Sequence record: MK799832.1
DNA length: 64,000 nucleotides
Reading direction: 5' to 3' (one strand)
Below are positions 35,910 through 52,135 of this stretch, piece by piece. Every line of letters starts with the position of its first letter. Within the stretch, counting starts at the first letter, position 1. Below the pieces are notes generated by a model. That model was given only the letters and a program-made list of their open reading frames with translations, was not told the DNA's origin and made no database searches. Made by a program: the position numbers and the translations under genes.

Positions 35910-36515
35910 ATGTTTAAAAAACTTCTTCCATTTGCATTGGCAACTATTATTCCTTCGGCTTGTGCATATGCCACAACTGATGAGATTAAAAATCCACCAT
36001 CTGTGGATGTGACTGTGAATGAAGAGAAGGCTGTTCCCATCGAAGTTGTAAGGAAGACATGGGATTGTCCTGATTGCAGTCCTAATGAGAGATATGTTCT
36101 CGCACAACTTCAAGAACAGACTCGTATCACTGATCGTAATGCACTTGCAACGATCATGGGTAACATCAGGTCAGAAAGTAACTTTCATCCTAACATCTGT
36201 GAAGGTGGTGCAAGAGTAAATTATAACCAGTGTCATGCTGGTGGTTATGGTCTGATTCAATGGACTTCTATTGGTCGTTATCGTGGTCTCGGAAACTTTG
36301 CCGCTAAATATAAATGTAACCCGAGTGCACTAGACTGTCAGGTTCGTTACATGGTGAACGAGAGCCAGTTCCAAAAGGTGCTACCTGAGTTCGAAGGTGG
36401 TGGTCTAACTGTGAGACAATACATGGTACCCTCCTACTACTGGTTGGGTTGGGGTATCAAGGGATACCGTGAACACTATGCATATGACTACACTAAACGA
36501 ATGATTTTGGTATGA
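35910..36515 (+). CDS. Phage tail-lysozyme-like peptidoglycan hydrolase with signal peptide
   Basis: MFKKLLPFALA leader; GNIRSES, GYGLIQWT. Confidence 0.75.
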   Translation: MFKKLLPFALATIIPSACAYATTDEIKNPPSVDVTVNEEKAVPIEVVRKTWDCPDCSPNERYVLAQLQEQTRITDRNALATIMGNIRSESNFHPNICEGGARVNYNQCHAGGYGLIQWTSIGRYRGLGNFAAKYKCNPSALDCQVRYMVNESQFQKVLPEFEGGGLTVRQYMVPSYYWLGWGIKGYREHYAYDYTKRMILV

Positions 36516-36904
36516 TTAAGAAGATTAAGACTAAACTCAAATCAATCTATAATATCTTTATTCCTAAAAGTGAAGGTATTATTAAAAAGGTTGTCAGTAA
36601 GGTAAAGAAACCTATTGCAACCTTCAGGTCTGTTCCTGCACCTGTCATTCTTCCTGAGGATCCGTGGTTTGGAAAACCAGTCCTCACCAAAAAGGCCCTT
36701 GACAAACAGAAGGAGATCGACCATAATAAGAAGGTCGAGAGGGAGACCACCCACCAGGTCGAGTCACCAAACATTCATCAAGAGATGTATGAATTGGCGA
36801 CTAAGAACTGGAACACTGTCAAAGAGACACAAGGAGGTTCTGAGAACTTCCATGAAGGTCCAGGTGGTTGGAACTCTGGAACAGGTAATAACCAGTTCCG
36901 TTGA
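36512..36904 (+). CDS. Hypothetical protein
   Basis: ORF track; basic N-terminus, ends GPGGWNSG. Confidence 0.5.
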   Translation: MIKKIKTKLKSIYNIFIPKSEGIIKKVVSKVKKPIATFRSVPAPVILPEDPWFGKPVLTKKALDKQKEIDHNKKVERETTHQVESPNIHQEMYELATKNWNTVKETQGGSENFHEGPGGWNSGTGNNQFR

Positions 36905-36957
36905 CTGCTGTAACCCCCTTGGTAGTTCAGGGTTAGAGGCGATAGGAACTACCACTT

Positions 36958-37031
36958 GACTCAATAGCTCAGCTGGATAGAGCAACTGCCTTCTAAGCAG
37001 TCGGTCGTAGGTTCGAATCCTACTTGAGTCG
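36958..37031 (+). tRNA. trnR: tRNA-Arg(UCU)
   Basis: GACTCAA/TTGAGTC acceptor, ACTGC-CTTCTAA-GCAGT anticodon arm, GTTCGAATC T-loop. Confidence 0.95.
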
Positions 37032-37032
37032 T

Positions 37033-37240
37033 TGGAGATTGATCATCTCCATAGGGTATGACAGAAAAGTTGGTGTGGTCAAGCACCCAACATTGTATAG
37101 TAAGGAAGGCTGTGGTGGCCACCATGTGACCTGGAGACAGGAGGCATGAGAACCCATACCAAGGGTCCTGAAAGTTCAGAGGTATCATTAACATTAGTGA
37201 GACCCCTCTGTTGAAGGTATAATGTAATCCTTCTACCCAC
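37033..37240 (+). ncRNA. Unassigned highly structured RNA between tRNA-Arg and tRNA-Thr
   Basis: Multiple helices, including TGGAGAT/ATCTCCA, GGTATG/CATACC, GTTGG/CCAAC, CCTG-GAGA-CAGG, GGGTC/GACCC and GAAGG/CCTTC. Confidence 0.55.
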
Positions 37241-37244
37241 CCAT

Positions 37245-37319
37245 GCCTCCGTAGCTCAGTGGTAGAGCAGGGCTTTTGTAAAGCTCAGGTCGCAAGTTCA
37301 AATCTTGTCAGAGGCTCCA
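37245..37319 (+). tRNA. trnT: tRNA-Thr(UGU), CCA encoded
   Basis: Cloverleaf; GGGCT-TTTGTAA-AGCTC. Confidence 0.93.
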
Positions 37320-37392
37320 GGGGAATTAGCTCAGTTGGTAGAGCACCTGCTTTGCAAGCAGGCTGTCAGGAGTTCGAGTCTCCTATTCTCCA
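37320..37392 (+). tRNA. trnA: tRNA-Ala(UGC)
   Basis: GGGGAAT/ATTCTCC acceptor with G3:U70; CCTGC-TTTGCAA-GCAGG. Confidence 0.95.
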
Positions 37393-37408
37393 TCCTCCTA
37401 GGAGGTTT

Positions 37409-37609
37409 ATGAGTAAAGAGTATACGTTCGGGGGTCTTGACAGATCTTCAATCAATATGTTAAGATTGATCAGTGAACTTGAGGGTTCTTTTCAACTCCT
37501 TAAATACATGGGGTACGAAGAGGACATGAATACCATTTCAGAAATGAAACAACGGTATTACAAACTTTACTTCAAGACCGCCAAAGAGGAGAAATCCAAT
37601 GACCTATAG
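37409..37609 (+). CDS. Small hypothetical protein within tRNA array
   Basis: GGAGG RBS; MSKEYTFGGLDRSSINMLRLISELEGS...; 3' end overlaps tRNA-Asn. Confidence 0.6.
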   Translation: MSKEYTFGGLDRSSINMLRLISELEGSFQLLKYMGYEEDMNTISEMKQRYYKLYFKTAKEEKSNDL

Positions 37610-37672
37610 CTCAGTTGGTAGAGCAGCTGACTGTTAATCAGCCTGTCCCAGGTTCGAGCCCTGGTGGGTCAG
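37600..37672 (+). tRNA. trnN: tRNA-Asn(GUU)
   Basis: Cloverleaf; GCTGA-CTGTTAA-TCAGC. Confidence 0.95.
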
Positions 37673-37675
37673 TTA

Positions 37676-37757
37676 GGGTGGTTGTCCGAGTGGTTAAAGG
37701 AGATGGACTGTAAATCCATTGGCTCTGCCTACCTTGGTTCAAATCCAAGACCACCCA
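37676..37757 (+). tRNA. trnY: tRNA-Tyr(GUA)
   Basis: GGGTGGT/ACCACCC; ATGGA-CTGTAAA-TCCAT; long variable arm. Confidence 0.95.
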
Positions 37758-37763
37758 CCTTGA

Positions 37764-37835
37764 GGGAGTTTAGCGCAGCGGTAGCGCAGTTGCTTTACAC
37801 GCAATTGGTCACAAGTTCGAATCTTGTAACTCCCA
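37764..37835 (+). tRNA. trnV: tRNA-Val(UAC)
   Basis: GGGAGTT/AACTCCC; GTTGC-TTTACAC-GCAAT. Confidence 0.93.
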
Positions 37836-37857
37836 TATCGAATTACAAACATGACCC

Positions 37858-38106
37858 ATGATTACTGTAAGATGCAAACAGTGTAACAAAGAAATCCGAA
37901 GTGACCATCACATACATTGTTGTGGTTGTCCCAATATGATGACGGTAATTGAAGACAAGGTTACAGCAGTTGACTTGTCTAAAGTAGTGATGGTAGAATC
38001 TAACAAGGAACCAATTTCAAAAGGTGTCCTTAGTAACTCCGATCTCTCCTATCAGGAAGAGAGGAGAAAAAGAAAGGTGAGGAGACTTGATTTTGAAGTT
38101 CGTTGA
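37858..38106 (+). CDS. Small Cys-rich (zinc-binding-like) protein
   Basis: CKQC...CCGCPN. Confidence 0.6.
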   Translation: MITVRCKQCNKEIRSDHHIHCCGCPNMMTVIEDKVTAVDLSKVVMVESNKEPISKGVLSNSDLSYQEERRKRKVRRLDFEVR

Positions 38107-38644
38107 AGTCAAAGATAACATCTATCGTATCAAGAGTATACTTGATACAAAGGATTTCTTTTCACTGAACGACGAACTTAATTCAAAATACAATACCTGG
38201 AGATTTACCAAAAACGATAGTTATGAGGAAGACCATCCCAACATGGGATGTTTGATGAAACCATTATCAAAATTCAATACTATTGGTGATAACCTTACAC
38301 TGATTAAGTATGGTACTCTACTCAAGTATCAGTGTCAGAAAATTATCAAACAAAATCTGACATTAAATAGAGTTAATACCAACATTCAGTTTTTTGGTCA
38401 AGAGTCTACCTTTCATACTGATGGCTCATTTGGAAGTTGGACTCTTTTAATTTTTGCGAATCCTTCTTGGAATAGTGTATGGGGAGGTGAGTTTGTTGTA
38501 ATGACTGAAGACAAAGAATATCTTTATCAATCATTCATTCCTAACGACGCAGTGTTATTCCCTGCACATTTGGAACACATGGGGTTTGCTCCTAATGTTC
38601 TTTGTAAACATCCAAGAATGACAATCGCATATACTTATACTTGA
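38087..38644 (+). CDS. 2OG-Fe(II) oxygenase superfamily
   Basis: FHTD, WGGE, FPAHLEH, RMTIAY. Confidence 0.8.
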   Translation: MILKFVEVKDNIYRIKSILDTKDFFSLNDELNSKYNTWRFTKNDSYEEDHPNMGCLMKPLSKFNTIGDNLTLIKYGTLLKYQCQKIIKQNLTLNRVNTNIQFFGQESTFHTDGSFGSWTLLIFANPSWNSVWGGEFVVMTEDKEYLYQSFIPNDAVLFPAHLEHMGFAPNVLCKHPRMTIAYTYT

Positions 38645-38681
38645 CAACCACACTAGATGTGGTATGATAGATAAGACACAC

Positions 38682-38770
38682 GGAAGAATGGCAGAGTGGT
38701 TGATTGCACCAGTCTTGAAAACTGGAGAGGTTAGTAGCCTCCGCGAGTTCGAATCTCGCTTCTTCCTCCA
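38682..38770 (+). tRNA. trnS: tRNA-Ser(UGA), CCA encoded
   Basis: GGAAGAA/TTCTTCC; CCAGT-CTTGAAA-ACTGG; long variable arm. Confidence 0.95.
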
Positions 38771-38844
38771 CGGAATGTAGCTCAGCTTGGTAGAGCACTG
38801 CTTTTGGGAAGCAGGGGTCGCACGTTCGAATCGTGTCATTCCGA
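38771..38844 (+). tRNA. trnP: tRNA-Pro(UGG)
   Basis: CGGAATG/CATTCCG; CTGCT-TTTGGGA-AGCAG. Confidence 0.95.
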
Positions 38845-38900
38845 CTGAATAAATACTAGAAGGATTATACCATCTAGATGGAACCCATAAGAATCTGATT

Positions 38901-40403
38901 ATGATAACCCCATCCCAATTCTTTAATGATACCAAGGAGATCATTGAAGTTGTAGAAGAATCTATTGAAGAAAAGCAGGCACTGGAAGAGGAAATTTCTC
39001 ATTCAGTGTCTTTAATTGATGGTGCGTTCAAAAGTATTCAAGAAAATATTCTCTCTTCTAACAAGAAAGAACTGTCTGTATATAAGGGACAGGTATTAGA
39101 AGTTTATAATTTTTGCAACGACATCAAAGAGAATTTACTTCCTAGGTATAAGAAGGAAGTTATTCAATCTGATCTAAGAACAGATCAAAAAATTAAAGAT
39201 CTCAAACAGGAGTTCTATGAAACTCTTGAAGAAAGAATTGAAGAGACCAAGGAAACCATCAAGGTATACTTCAGAGAGGAAGTAAAGGATCTCAACAAAC
39301 TCAGGGCAAGTGTTGTTCTGGTTGAAAGATATATTAAGGAAAACTCCTCAGCAATTGTCAGTCTGAGAGAGGAAGTATTTGCTCAACTTAGAGAGTCTAA
39401 TAGTGATTCTGAAATTAATCAGATTGTCATTCAGGATAAGTTAGATGAGATAAGCAAAGAGTATGAGACGTTAAGTGAGGGACTTCTGAATGAACCACCC
39501 TCCACTAGTAATAGTGACCCACTCACACCATTAGATCAGAACTTTGTAACTCTGGATCAGTTACAACAACACTACAAGGTATTTGTAAACAGAGTTCAAC
39601 AACAACTGGCAACAGTTGGTGGTGGTGGTGAAGTCAGACTTGAGTTTCTGGATGACATTGATAGATCCACTGCTCTGATTGATGGTAGAGTTCTTGCATA
39701 CCAAGCATCTACTGGCAAGTTTATTGGAACTACCACTACCTCTGGTAGTGGACTTCCTTCTGGATCAGTAGGACAACTTCTACAACATGATGGTTCATCC
39801 TTTGTTGGTATTGCATCCACAGGATTTTCAGACTATGTAATTAGTGAAGGTCAAGGTTACTACGCATACACGACTGACTACTACACAGTTGGTGTTGCAA
39901 ATACCACACAAGAAATTATTGAGGGAGAGTGGACACTTATTCAACCACAAGTAGCATCTGGTGGTTTGTATAATTATCAACCAGGTCCCATGCTTAGATG
40001 CAATGCTGGTGATCCTTGGATTGGTATGGGTGCTACAATTGGTACAGGTCAGACAGAGTTCTCATTGGCAGGAACAAAACCTGGCACTTCATGTATTGTA
40101 AGATCAGTTTTTAGATTTGAACCTGATACTGATGAAACTGATTTGGATATGAGACTCCACTTCACTACTAATACAGCAACTCAAGGAACAGGACTCACTA
40201 ACTTCAACATTGAGAAACAGGCACTGGTTATGACTGTTGGTGCTGCTGTCACATACACCAGTGAAACATTAATCTCTTTCTTTGTTGGTGAGACATTGTA
40301 TGGTGATACAAAGGCAGATGCAGGTTCATTCTGTGTTGAGGTAAATGGAACAACTGATGGAACCCTAGAGATTCTGGGTTTAACTGTTATGGTAGACGTA
40401 TAA
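38901..40403 (+). CDS. Probable virion protein: coiled-coil N-half, fibre-like C-half
   Basis: Late promoter ATAAATA at ~38850; PLTPLDQNFVTLDQL...GGGGEVRLEFLDD, then Gly/Thr-rich domain. Confidence 0.6.
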   Translation: MITPSQFFNDTKEIIEVVEESIEEKQALEEEISHSVSLIDGAFKSIQENILSSNKKELSVYKGQVLEVYNFCNDIKENLLPRYKKEVIQSDLRTDQKIKDLKQEFYETLEERIEETKETIKVYFREEVKDLNKLRASVVLVERYIKENSSAIVSLREEVFAQLRESNSDSEINQIVIQDKLDEISKEYETLSEGLLNEPPSTSNSDPLTPLDQNFVTLDQLQQHYKVFVNRVQQQLATVGGGGEVRLEFLDDIDRSTALIDGRVLAYQASTGKFIGTTTTSGSGLPSGSVGQLLQHDGSSFVGIASTGFSDYVISEGQGYYAYTTDYYTVGVANTTQEIIEGEWTLIQPQVASGGLYNYQPGPMLRCNAGDPWIGMGATIGTGQTEFSLAGTKPGTSCIVRSVFRFEPDTDETDLDMRLHFTTNTATQGTGLTNFNIEKQALVMTVGAAVTYTSETLISFFVGETLYGDTKADAGSFCVEVNGTTDGTLEILGLTVMVDV

Positions 40404-40415
40404 GGAGGAAAACCA

Positions 40416-42971
40416 ATGGGAGTTAAAATTTACGCAGATACAAGTACTGGATTCCTCCACTTTGATGGTAGTAGAATCTCACCCAAACCACTGAATGGTG
40501 TTATTACAGCTTCTGCATCTAATAAAGCATTTAGAATTAGAATCACAAGAAGTGACCTTCTTCAAGCAAATGGTAACCCTAGGGTTATGTTCAAGCACCT
40601 GAAGATGAATAGGGTTGAAAGACAAGATGGTACAAATCTTCGTCTTGATCTTGGATATAGCAGACAACAAATTATTGATTATATCAATACTGAAGCACAG
40701 AAGGTTGTTGAGACTGGTATTGAAGGTGTTGCAGTATGTATTGATGGTACTGTTGTATCTTATGCTGCAACTACAATTGACTTTACTGGTAGTGCAGTTC
40801 AATCTCTTGAGGTAACTGGTGGTATTGCTACGATTTCTATTGCACAAACCACTGCTGTTGGTGGTGGTAGTTCATATGCAGATAGTGATGTAGATACTCA
40901 TCTCAATGTTGGTCTTGCAAACACTGGTGATATTCTTACTTGGGGTGGTTCTGACTATGAGTGGAGTGCTCCTTCCACTATTGGAGCAGGTAATCCTGTA
41001 GTTAATGGTTCTATCACTGGTGTAGGTAACAGTACTCTACGTCTCGTACTACAAGATTCTAATGTTATTGATATTGATTTAAGTACTCTGAACACCACTG
41101 GTTCTGATGATGACATCAACACTAGGATTACCAAGGCAGTATCTTTTGCAAGAACTGAAACCACTTACTTGAGATATTCAGTAGGTAGTGCATCCAATAA
41201 TATGTGGGATGCTGCATTCAGGACACCTGGTAGCACTCCATTGGGTATGGGATCAGCAGCAGATACTCATGTTTCTAATGATGGTAATGCACAACCCTTC
41301 GCACAAACTCTTATCTTCAGAAACGCAGGTATCAATACTGATAGAGACAGTGTTCTAGTTGGAGTTACTGATGGTGATGAAGCGGATATCATGGTTCCTG
41401 GTATAATTCATCATTATATTGGTATTAGTTCTACCAAGAAACTTGTTCATCACTGGGGTGAACCACACGTCCTAGGTATTGGCACTACTCAGGCTAACAG
41501 AGCAGAGTTGATGGATGTAAGTGATGATAAATTCTATGGTATCTTTATGGACTTTGATGGACAGAGATTTGGTACTGGTGTTTCCACATCTCAACTGAAT
41601 AGTCAGTTTAGATATAAAGTGGTTGATCTTTCAAGTGGAGATGTTACTGACTTAACACCAAACTGGACACACTATGGTAAGAGTCAGGATGGTAATGGTG
41701 ATTCGCGAGTGTATTCAAGATTAATGTATGGTGCTCTTGCTGGTACAAATAATAATAATGTATCATCAGCATCAAATGTACATTTAAGATTTGAGGGTGA
41801 TATTGCACAGGCAACTAGTATAACCTATCAACAGGGAGCAGTTTTGCTTGATGATACACAGGTAAGTTTGATGGTTCGTAACCCCGAGAAGTATCTCAGA
41901 GACTATAAGGTTGGTACTTCATCTAGAAGACCTTACTTTGATACTACTCAACTCTTCAAAGTGAGTTTTGCAAACTACCATTTCCAAGCAGCACAAGTTT
42001 GGCTAATGGGTGATGGTGATTATGATTCACTTGGTTCTTCTAGTGAACAGGGTGTCAGAAATTTTGTAAGACCAGACGCATATATGAGACTGAATTGGCC
42101 CAGTTATCCATCTTATACTGGATTCACAACTGTGAGTGTTACCGCTGGTCCTTCCTTTACGAATACAAAATCAACTAATTTTGAGAACCTGGATCATGCT
42201 ACCAGGAATCGTCAAAGTGGTGAGTTCACTAACTTGATTAAGACATCTGGTCAGACGGCATCTGCATACACTCTGAGTTTCTGGTTCAGACCAGGTAACA
42301 ACTCTCATGAGGATCAAAACATCTTTAACGCTTTTAGTCAATACAATACATTTGAGGGTACAAGTATCATCCAAGTGATGTACAATGGTAATACAGCATC
42401 AACTAGAAACATTAGATTCAAGGTTCAGGATCAGTCTGGTGGACTTGATGCAGATAATTACAGACTTGACTTAGCTACACCTGTTGGTGATGTGACTCAC
42501 ACCAATGGTAGTAATGGTTTCCATCATATTGCTATCACCTGTGATGGTTCTGCTAATGCATATACATCAGCAAGTCTTGGCATCAAGATCTATATCAATG
42601 GTGTACTCCAAACACTGACTGATAATAGTAATGGTGGTGGTATTGAAGATGTTCCATCTGGTGGTGAGACTTTCTCTATTGCTCCAAATAAAATCGCACT
42701 TGGAAGACAACCAACCAATGCAAGATATATGAGAGATTCAAAGGTTGATGAACTCTCATTCTTCAATACAGAACTCAATGCAACTGAAGTCGCTTGTCTG
42801 TATAATGGTGGTACTCCATCCAATCTTGCTAACTTCATTCCAGGACCAGCACACTGGTACAGAATGGGTGATGGTGATTCAGCACCAACTCTTGCAGATA
42901 GTATCGGTAACGCAGACCTGTCTATGACGAATATGTCTGACGCCAACTTTGTGACTATAGTTCCTTCTTGA
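40416..42971 (+). CDS. Probable virion/adhesin protein with C-terminal concanavalin A/LamG-like domain
   Basis: YTLSFWF...FHHIAITCDG...IYINGV...VDELSFFN...VACLYNGG. Confidence 0.7.
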   Translation: MGVKIYADTSTGFLHFDGSRISPKPLNGVITASASNKAFRIRITRSDLLQANGNPRVMFKHLKMNRVERQDGTNLRLDLGYSRQQIIDYINTEAQKVVETGIEGVAVCIDGTVVSYAATTIDFTGSAVQSLEVTGGIATISIAQTTAVGGGSSYADSDVDTHLNVGLANTGDILTWGGSDYEWSAPSTIGAGNPVVNGSITGVGNSTLRLVLQDSNVIDIDLSTLNTTGSDDDINTRITKAVSFARTETTYLRYSVGSASNNMWDAAFRTPGSTPLGMGSAADTHVSNDGNAQPFAQTLIFRNAGINTDRDSVLVGVTDGDEADIMVPGIIHHYIGISSTKKLVHHWGEPHVLGIGTTQANRAELMDVSDDKFYGIFMDFDGQRFGTGVSTSQLNSQFRYKVVDLSSGDVTDLTPNWTHYGKSQDGNGDSRVYSRLMYGALAGTNNNNVSSASNVHLRFEGDIAQATSITYQQGAVLLDDTQVSLMVRNPEKYLRDYKVGTSSRRPYFDTTQLFKVSFANYHFQAAQVWLMGDGDYDSLGSSSEQGVRNFVRPDAYMRLNWPSYPSYTGFTTVSVTAGPSFTNTKSTNFENLDHATRNRQSGEFTNLIKTSGQTASAYTLSFWFRPGNNSHEDQNIFNAFSQYNTFEGTSIIQVMYNGNTASTRNIRFKVQDQSGGLDADNYRLDLATPVGDVTHTNGSNGFHHIAITCDGSANAYTSASLGIKIYINGVLQTLTDNSNGGGIEDVPSGGETFSIAPNKIALGRQPTNARYMRDSKVDELSFFNTELNATEVACLYNGGTPSNLANFIPGPAHWYRMGDGDSAPTLADSIGNADLSMTNMSDANFVTIVPS

Positions 42972-43018
42972 CTTATCTGGTGATCTGAAGTAGTATTATC
43001 TCACCTACATAAGTCAGT

Positions 43019-43192
43019 ATGGAAGTCTTCACGGTGCAAGAATTTCAAGAGAATTGGGACGAGCTTATAGACAGGGTAGAGAACGGAGAGATATTCGGAA
43101 TAGTAAATGAAAATGGATCTGCAGCAGTGATAATGCCAACTGACGATCCATTGTACAAAATGTACTCAGAAAATAATAACGAAGCTCCCTAG
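43019..43192 (+). CDS. 57-aa protein with Phd/YefM antitoxin-like pattern (below track cut-off)
   Basis: MEVFTVQEFQENWDELIDRVENGEIFGIVNENGSAAVIMP; promoter TTGACT-N17-TAGTAT upstream. Confidence 0.5.
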   Translation: MEVFTVQEFQENWDELIDRVENGEIFGIVNENGSAAVIMPTDDPLYKMYSENNNEAP

Positions 43193-43263
43193 GGACTGTC
43201 GCCTAACGGTTAAGGCCCACTGCTTATAACGGTGTGACCTGGGTTCAATTCCCAGCAGTCCTA
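43192..43263 (+). tRNA. trnI: tRNA-Ile(UAU)
   Basis: GGGACTG/CAGTCCT; CACTG-CTTATAA-CGGTG; GTTCAATTC T-loop. Confidence 0.88.
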
Positions 43264-43267
43264 CCTT

Positions 43268-43340
43268 GGGGGATTAGCAATCTGGTGAATGCACCGAACT
43301 CATAATTCGGCTAAGGTGGGTTCGATCCCCTCATCCCCCA
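43268..43340 (+). tRNA. trnM: tRNA with CAU anticodon (elongator Met, or Ile2 if lysidine-modified)
   Basis: GGGGGAT/ATCCCCC; CCGAA-CTCATAA-TTCGG. Confidence 0.9.
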
Positions 43341-43415
43341 TTGGACAGTTTAATTACTGTCCTCTTGACTCACAAGGTCAAAACCCTTATACTACTAAGG
43401 TCAACACGCAAGACA

Positions 43416-44478: not shown

Positions 44479-44662
44479 CAGCACTGGTCGGTGAAGGGAG
44501 GCCCCTTCAATCCCGCGTTTCTTAGTTCGTAAAACTAAGTGGTGGAGTCACTGGACCCAACTGAGTTTACTAATTCTCCAAAGATTAGTTGGTGCGGATG
44601 GAGGAAACTCCCGCCTGAGATTTAGTTATTACTCAGTGATAAAAATAACTTGGCGAGCCTGA
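44478..44662 (+). ncRNA. manA RNA motif (cyanophage-type structured RNA)
   Basis: Recognised blocks GCACTGGTCGG...GGTGGAGTCA...GACCC...GGTGCGGATGG...CCCGCCTG...TGGCGAGCCTG with repeated TTT-stem-AAA hairpins; recalled from memory, not searched. Confidence 0.7.
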
Positions 44663-44667
44663 GTACC

Positions 44668-51996: not shown

Positions 51997-52042
51997 CATG
52001 GACAGGTCAGGGTTTCCTGACTTACCTAAACTCCCCTTAAAC

Positions 52043-52135
52043 CAAGACCTCTAGGGAGTATAAACACGTCTTTCATATCCTCGTTAAGGGTACGAGGAAA
52101 TAGTAACTCCACCATTTCCCTGATGGTCTTACTTT
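52043..52135 (+). ncRNA. PhotoRC-II-like structured psbA 5' leader
   Basis: AAGACC...GGAGT...CCTCGT/ACGAGG hairpin...ACTCC-ACCAT/ATGGT-CTT directly upstream of psbA. Confidence 0.7.

Follow-up and report, generated by a model that had tools for sequence, protein, structure and literature searches.

The manA motif was found in marine metagenomes, T4-like cyanophages and two gamma-proteobacteria, and was rated as a certain RNA with a complex fold and conserved nucleotides, marked "Y" for cis-regulatory and "y" for riboswitch (Weinberg et al. 2010, Genome Biol 11:R31, PMC2864571). The family, Rfam RF01745, was described in the 5' UTRs of protein-coding genes and has stayed an orphan among riboswitch candidates ever since; we found no ligand for it in the literature, 16 years after the proposal. 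Rfam matches to manA have been listed for about 18 cyanophages including ACG-2014f (91.4 bits), with S-B05 absent from the list (2023, Table S7, PMC9964418). The first report of a natural RNA that builds an icosahedral cage in vitro, in 2026, concerned manA. By cryo-EM, manA RNAs assemble into pentamer-based decamers, octamers and a 60-subunit T=1 cage through the intermolecular kissing loops L5-L7' and L8-L9', and in another structural group through an L3-L8' contact and a contact between the GNRA loop L6 and a receptor (Ren et al. 2026, bioRxiv 10.64898/2026.07.01.735769). The in vitro conditions were about 3 mg/ml RNA, 10 mM Mg2+ and a 50 C annealing step, and the preprint treats manA as a 5'-UTR element, containing neither tRNA context nor in vivo data. 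Two other systems are close in position or in origin. Phage T4 produces two stable RNAs from its tRNA region, RNAC and RNAD, whose role is unexplained (PMC3014915), and the wcaG RNA (RF01761) is another orphan cyanophage RNA from the same 2010 study, with a different fold and a length of about 100 nt.

The stretch analysed here (the window) is 64,000 nt of the record MK799832.1 of Synechococcus myovirus S-B05, in which window positions 36500-38900 equal record positions 160500-162900 with 100% identity. A cmscan search identified positions 37033-37243 (+) as manA RNA, with 82.5 bits (gathering score 55.2), an E-value of 1.7e-19, and an alignment that runs over the full length of the model (1-192 of 192). 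S-B05 is a T4-like cyanomyovirus of the family Kyanoviridae, which fits the occurrence of manA in T4-like cyanophages and marine sequences, and its copy shares with the family the whole model, the helices, the conserved loops and this host range. The structured RNA at this locus is thus the manA RNA of S-B05; the family is already known and the identification is an ordinary one, since a single Rfam scan names it and Rfam already lists its nearest relative. A preliminary description of the locus, made from the letters alone, gave exact coordinates and sequences for a real structured RNA and left it without a named family, saying that a match to a known family would count against its proposal; exactly such a match, over the whole model, was found here.

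No credible ORF occurs in the manA region on either strand, as had been proposed for the gap between tRNA-Arg and tRNA-Thr. The only + strand ORF, of 41 aa from a TTG, was rejected as coding, and so were the - strand ORFs (45-77 aa), which are antisense to the tRNA and the manA RNA; relatives of the S-B05 copy have indels of lengths not divisible by three, and their stems carry compensatory changes. Folded as a single sequence, the RNA has an MFE of -69.2 kcal/mol (z = -2.75), which is modestly above chance, as 2 of 200 shuffles were equally good. The 208.9-kb genome contains this single manA copy, and no second one was found in the remaining 144.9 kb. By blastn, the S-B05 subtype is present in 50 isolate records (45 ACG-2014f genomes and the S-B05 group), all of them lacking a manA annotation, and the majority subtype is present in 37 records, mainly of Prochlorococcus phages, with one copy per record. 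In the S-B05 GenBank record the stretch 36500-38900, which holds 8 tRNAs and manA, is annotated only with "hypothetical protein (x4)". The missing manA annotation in S-B05 and 49 related genomes, and the unlisted S-B05 tRNAs of the stretch that was checked, are worth correcting.

To describe the fold we used two alignments. The first (A1) is a MAFFT alignment of the window copy and 81 unique manA copies, and the second (A2) consists of 16 copies of the S-B05 subtype. Between subtypes A1 is not structural: L5 is shifted by 3 columns, P1, P4-P7 and P8b are misaligned, and RNAalifold recovers only 22 pairs. A1 was therefore used only for P2, P8a, P9 and L8-L9, whose columns are in register, its figures for nested helices and for L5-L7 were discarded, and the whole fold was evaluated on A2, which is dependable for this. 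The elements and their coordinates are collected in Table 1.

Table 1. Features of the S-B05 manA locus in window coordinates; helix positions in brackets are the coordinate minus 37032.
Feature	Position	Strand	Basis and remarks
Sigma-70-like promoter match TTGACA-17-CATAAT	36699-36727	+	Consensus match only (weak); about 230 nt 5' of tRNA-Arg
tRNA-Arg (anticodon TCT)	36957-37032	+	ARAGORN; Rfam tRNA 36958-37031, 72.4 bits; without encoded CCA
P1 hairpin	37033-37051 (1-6/14-19)	+	Rfam alignment; 90.6% paired in A2; loop with self-complementary UGAUCA
P2, 5' strand GGGUA	37054-37058 (22-26)	+	Pairs with UACCC 37234-37238 (202-206); closes the multi-stem fold
P3 stem-loop	37061-37096 (29-64)	+	UGG in loop invariant; 98.8% paired, 5 of 5 pairs compensatory in A2
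P4	(69-74/134-139)	+	Rfam alignment
P5 hairpin	37108-37120 (76-78/86-88)	+	L5 GUGGUG 37112-37117, complementary to L7
P6, longer in the S-B05 subtype	37122-37150 (90-118)	+	Capped by GNRA tetraloop GAGA 37134-37137
P7 hairpin	37153-37165 (121-123/131-133)	+	L7 AUACCAA 37156-37162; UACCA pairs with UGGUG of L5
P8 two-part stem	37177-37210 (145-178)	+	Invariant CC in internal loop; L8 37189-37196, ACAUUA complementary to L9
P9 hairpin	37213-37233 (181-201)	+	L9 37218-37228; UAAUGU pairs with L8
P2, 3' strand UACCC, single-stranded tail ACCCA and spacer U37244	37234-37244	+	Sequence, Rfam alignment
tRNA-Thr (TGT), encoded CCA	37245-37319	+	ARAGORN, Rfam; tRNA-Ala 37320-37392 directly 3'

All consensus helices P1-P9 (the 5' hairpin, the closing helix and seven inner stems) are present in the S-B05 copy. 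In A2, pairing over the family fold and the two loop-loop contacts amounts to 90.1%, compared with 79.5% for shuffles. Compensatory changes occur in 34 pairs, compared with 19.4 for shuffles, and none of 500 shuffles reached 34; the whole-fold score is 0.359, with slid registers at most 0.106. The claim of a conserved structured non-coding RNA is therefore borne out, its fold being kept by compensatory changes in 16 subtype relatives. For example, P2 and the inner stem of P6 are both 100% paired in A2, each with 3 compensatory pairs (P2 is 99.8% paired in A1). Also present in the S-B05 copy are the loops and junctions that the family conserves, namely UGAC..GAA, UGG in L3, GUGGUG, GAA, ACCA, CC in P8 and GGUA..AAUCC. 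Among them, GUGGUG, ACCA, GAA, GGUA..AAUCC and the CC of the P8 internal loop are invariant or nearly invariant columns in the 82 sequences of A1; positions that the 3' search pattern fixes cannot vary in this set, an effect that does not touch the 5' and central motifs. The S-B05 subtype differs from the majority in having P2 as GGGUA/UACCC instead of GGGAG/CUCCC, a longer P6 and a 3-bp P7, and the S-B05 copy scores 82.5 bits, compared with 160-173 bits for the copies of Prochlorococcus phages.

Most of the helices drawn in the preliminary description belong to this fold. TGGAGAT/ATCTCCA is P1, GTTGG/CCAAC is P3, CCTG-GAGA-CAGG is the tip of P6 with its GNRA loop, CAGAGG/CCTCTG is P8 and GAAGG/CCTTC is P9; all of them agree with the family consensus, and their pairing is kept in relatives. 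Its other elements did not hold up. GGTATG/CATACC, taken as the closure of the multiloop, has zero compensatory changes and is broken in ACG-2014f and in locus L109, where P2 compensates: in ACG-2014f, GGGUA/UACCC of P2 becomes GGAUG/CAUCC and the CAUACC loop is unchanged. This apparent pairing is due to the likeness of L7 (AUACCA) to the true 3' partner (UACCCA). The 12-base palindrome TGGTGGCCACCA is in reality the L5 loop GUGGUG followed by the 3' strand of P5 and the start of P6. As a pairing (UGGU/ACCA) it shows wobble-compatible one-sided changes only, is lacking in the majority subtype, and is at odds with P5, which is invariant, and with P6, where 4 of 4 pairs are compensatory. GGTC/GACC reaches 73% pairing, in competition with P7. 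Neither the pseudoknot topology nor a dimerisation site at the palindrome is thus supported, and the loop-loop contacts of the family lie at other sites, L5-L7 and L8-L9.

In the S-B05 copy, L8-L9 is a 6-bp complementarity (ACAUUA/UAAUGU) and L5-L7 one of 5 bp (UGGUG/UACCA). Taken alone, both are within chance: P is about 0.22 for L5-L7 and about 0.09 for L8-L9, and their duplexes reach only -4.6 and -3.8 kcal/mol, in this order. Across relatives, the six L9 positions were left free by the search pattern and pair with L8 in register in A1, where L8-L9 has a covariation score of 0.478, against 0.138 in shuffles (reached in 0 of 500), with slid registers at most 0.11 (82 sequences). Its four core pairs are about 98% paired, with the compositions AU 39/CG 38/UA 5, UA 66/AU 16, GC 59/UA 14/CG 5 and UA 72/UG 7, and even within the S-B05 subtype the helix occurs as ACAUUA/UAAUGU, UUACAUUA/UAAUGUAA, UGCUUUA/UAAAGUA, UUACUA/UAGUAA and CUAC/GUAG. 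L5-L7 is 96% paired in A2 and shows pair-preserving one-sided changes only, with no two-sided compensation, so it is conserved rather than covarying. Judging from these alignments, the loop-loop complementarity is kept by selection. The intermolecular nature of L8-L9 and L5-L7 would be carried over from the preprint, and the covariation would fit intramolecular pairing equally well. Both complementarities and the GNRA loop L6 of the RNAs studied by Ren et al. are found in the sequence of the S-B05 copy too.

Several further features were seen around P1. The palindrome UGAUCA in its loop (37039-37045) is replaced by AGCU or GAUC in other relatives, and of the 11 unique types of P1 loop 8 contain a palindrome of at least 4 nt, where 3.5 would be expected; GACG, which is the most frequent P1 loop, has none. 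By its sequence, a palindromic P1 loop could be a two-fold contact; no such interface is named in the text of the 2026 preprint. The S-B05 copy also contains a 7-bp complementary run between the P1 loop UUGAUCA (37039-37045) and the P3 loop UGGUCAA (37076-37084). In locus L110 (1634-1826, -), a chimeric manA follows tRNA-Thr, with a P1 identical to the S-B05 type and the remainder of the majority type (GGGAG...), which suggests either recombination within manA or a P1 that may travel with the tRNA junction.

The surroundings of the S-B05 copy depart from the setting in which the family was described, as this copy lies between two tRNAs instead of in the 5' UTR of a protein-coding gene. ARAGORN found ten + strand tRNAs at 36957-43341, and the manA match exactly fills the gap between tRNA-Arg and tRNA-Thr, in agreement with the earlier placement of the RNA inside the tRNA array. 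G37031 is the tRNA-Arg discriminator and the end of the Rfam tRNA model, the discriminator is followed by UUGG, and U37032 is a one-base spacer. The layout is thus tRNA-Arg to 37031, manA at 37033-37243 and tRNA-Thr from 37245, with one-base spacers on both sides. ACG-2014f, whose copy is of the same subtype with 77.7% identity, has the same order of tRNA-Arg (to 1483), manA (1485-1695) and a tRNA (from 1697) with one-base spacers; it differs in that the downstream tRNA is Asn and not Thr, in two compensatory changes of P2 and in its P1 loop, UAAUUA. In Syn1, the same tRNA-Arg and tRNA-Thr are 2 nt apart with manA absent between them, so that manA is a discrete module, present or absent, whose borders are the tRNA borders.

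Relatives of this type were collected with a 14-base 5' pattern that is independent of the 3' pattern used for the family as a whole. It gave at least 120 matches, and among those listed 21 are real manA of the S-B05 type from viral metagenomes, confirmed by Rfam with 72-100 bits. All evaluable copies among the matches listed (20 of 20) have a same-strand tRNA abutting P1, with a spacer of 1 nt (2 nt in L044), and the models of the flanking tRNA and manA are typically 1 nt apart. The upstream tRNA is mostly Arg-TCT and otherwise Val, Thr or Gly. A second tRNA (Thr, Asn, Val or Gly) begins 3-10 nt past the 3' helix in 11 of the 21 copies listed, and some copies have a tRNA upstream and an ORF downstream. 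We found no paper that mentions an association of manA with tRNAs, and the supplement of Weinberg et al. contains no text on tRNA context or on the location of its "pseudoknot?"; the tRNA-punctuated subtype thus appears to be undescribed so far. In a separate observation, the sequence after manA in L147 (about 1460-1541, -) starts like the tRNA-Asn that follows the L185 copy, and no tRNA was called at this place by ARAGORN or with the Rfam tRNA model; by this similarity it may be a degenerate tRNA.

For the family as a whole, a 3'-end motif pattern gave at least 120 IMG/VR loci, nearly all of them true manA, and this pattern-selected sample of 120 listed loci plus the window copy (121 copies) was used for counting contexts. 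Among the matches listed, a same-strand tRNA ends 0-1 nt before P1 in 13 of 100 evaluable copies, a tRNA starts 3-8 nt after the 3'-end CCCAC in 14 of 113, and a tRNA occurs on at least one side in 22 copies and on both sides in 6. About 80% of the sampled copies are not adjacent to a tRNA and lie 5-45 nt upstream of an ORF. Every non-tRNA copy with enough flank among the matches listed (88 of 88) is followed within 300 nt by the start of an ORF of 50 aa or more, at a median distance of 25 nt and within 30 nt in 54 of them; a terminator-like hairpin is present in 4 of the 88 and a Shine-Dalgarno-like motif at 23 of the 88 downstream ORFs. The genes downstream of manA include gp32 (the largest cluster, 25 loci among the matches listed), transaldolase, GDP-mannose 4,6-dehydratase, glycosyltransferase family 11, 2OG-Fe(II) oxygenase, a cupin/JmjC protein, DUF6561 and many small ORFs. 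For instance, manA is located between regA and purL/hsp20 in P-SSM2, and 75 nt past the gp23 stop codon in P-RSM4. The published 5'-UTR picture holds for most manA copies, and the partners, tRNAs included, share no pathway. A search of genome contigs also gave at least 120 matches, of which those listed are essentially all due to chance, with one real copy. This copy (L296; NZ_RMVE01000006.1, a 188,235-bp contig of Nonlabens xiamenensis 1Q3) scores 141.7 bits and has a PhotoRC-II RNA and a tRNA within 8 kb; the contig, from a bacterial RefSeq assembly, is as large as a T4-like cyanophage genome and is probably co-assembled phage rather than Nonlabens DNA, and the contig search therefore tells nothing about cellular manA.

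Taking these results together, the best overall explanation for the S-B05 locus, to which we give a probability of about 0.6, is a manA module of the tRNA array that would be cut free by tRNA processing and would associate with itself. The manA RNA would be transcribed together with the tRNAs of the array. The promoter match upstream of tRNA-Arg (Table 1), where this transcript may start and after which no terminator-like site was found on the + strand except 38743-38759, a tRNA arm inside tRNA-Ser, would be weakly in line with such co-transcription. In cyanobacteria, RNase Z makes an endonucleolytic cut at the discriminator of tRNAs without an encoded CCA, and RNase P cleaves at position +1 of a tRNA. 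The 5' end of manA would thus come from cleavage after the tRNA-Arg discriminator, for which, given the lack of an encoded CCA in this tRNA, an RNase Z- or RNase E-type 3' endonuclease would be responsible; the 3' end of manA would be produced by RNase P when the 5' end of tRNA-Thr is matured. The two cleavages would leave a free RNA of about 212 nt (about 37032-37244) instead of an mRNA leader. Release by the flanking tRNA processing had been suggested before, and it fits the one-base spacers and the sandwich that recurs in ACG-2014f and many metagenomic relatives; we regard the release of a free RNA of about 212 nt as likely.

The RNA has the fold of the family, a multi-stem core closed by P2 with L5/L7 and L8/L9 as complementary surface loops, and a free manA RNA with these loops intact could form closed homo-oligomers. 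Since the kissing contacts build pentamer-based closed oligomers in vitro in the family, a self-associating particle or scaffold would be the most likely mode of action, and we put forward its presence in the infected cell tentatively, by analogy with the in vitro assemblies. The strongest version, that the lineage of S-B05 and ACG-2014f and its uncultured relatives have a host-processed manA of about 212 nt which is not a 5'-UTR riboswitch and multimerises in the infected cell, by way of L8-L9 and L5-L7, into closed RNA-only particles (decamers, 60-mer cages), is unlikely; if true, manA would be a natural virus-encoded RNA nanocage or scaffold. A free RNA cannot be the general form of the family, as about 80% of the copies have no adjacent tRNA and lie at a median of 25 nt 5' of an ORF. 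A precedent in position is found in T4, whose RNAC and RNAD also come from a tRNA region and are unexplained: like them, S-B05 manA is a small non-tRNA RNA in the tRNA cluster of a T4-type phage, on the tRNA strand, and the analogy is one of position only.

The family's own literature points to another function, a cis-acting, riboswitch-like regulator that binds a metabolite and controls the genes downstream, here the operon of tRNAs and ORFs. The rating of 2010 was in this direction, the ORFs that follow all 88 non-tRNA copies listed at a median of 25 nt fit it for the majority context, and the junction nucleotides are invariant across subtypes. At the S-B05 locus, however, the only manA copy of the phage is one base away from a tRNA, with no ribosome-binding site and no terminator-like hairpin after it, and an expression platform is scarce elsewhere too, given the 4 hairpins and 23 Shine-Dalgarno-like motifs among the 88 copies listed. 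The diversity of the downstream partners, which have no common pathway and include tRNAs, weakens the metabolite-riboswitch reading, as do 16 years without a reported ligand, and we consider it improbable for this locus. A compact, nuclease-resistant domain that marks cleavage points in polycistronic phage transcripts, or shields the 5' end of the mRNA or tRNA precursor that follows, would account for other observations, namely that manA is always closely followed by another feature (an ORF 5-45 nt or a tRNA 0-5 nt downstream), that a tRNA 3' end abuts every evaluable S-B05-type copy, and that in the order tRNA-manA-ORF the 3' processing of the tRNA would turn P1 into the hairpin at the 5' end of the mRNA. 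Nine helices, invariant loops and covarying loop-loop pairs are needless for a stabiliser, though, and the self-assembly in vitro would be left unexplained, so we hold such a processing or stability module to be quite improbable.

The position among phage tRNAs, with the stable RNAs of the T4 tRNA region as a precedent, is all that speaks for a decoy or counter-defence RNA of the tRNA array, which would titrate a nuclease, an RNA-binding protein or some other host factor. Neither with ARAGORN nor with the Rfam tRNA model do tRNA-like features appear in the manA RNA, most family members are outside tRNA arrays and no partner protein is known, which makes this role very improbable. As for chance complementarity in a non-functional spacer, the single-sequence z of only -2.75 and the loop complementarities, unremarkable alone, would agree with it, but the Rfam E-value and more than 100 homologues with compensatory changes refute this reading, and its probability is close to nil. 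Because the ends of the S-B05 subtype coincide with tRNA processing sites, it is a natural case in which manA should exist free of mRNA, and for this reason infections with S-B05 and ACG-2014f are suited to asking whether manA particles form in cells and what their function would be. The tRNA context of S-B05 manA is suggestive, and the tRNA-punctuated subtype is worth reporting because in it an RNA with in vitro self-assembly would occur naturally in a free form.

Besides manA, the window contains a wcaG RNA at 44561-44664 (+; 64.1 bits) and a PhotoRC-II RNA at 52018-52111 (+; 75.7 bits), both above their gathering thresholds, so that manA co-occurs with these two RNAs, as in the family. The next gap between tRNAs, at 37409-37609 (+), holds an ORF of 66 aa (MSKEYTFGG...) that is preceded by AGGAGG at 37400-37405, overlaps tRNA-Asn by 10 nt and is unannotated in the related phage RB11-B. 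An eleventh tRNA of S-B05 (86 nt, 57.9 bits) is located on the other strand, far from the array, at 84166-84251 of the record (locus L124, 34166-34251, -).
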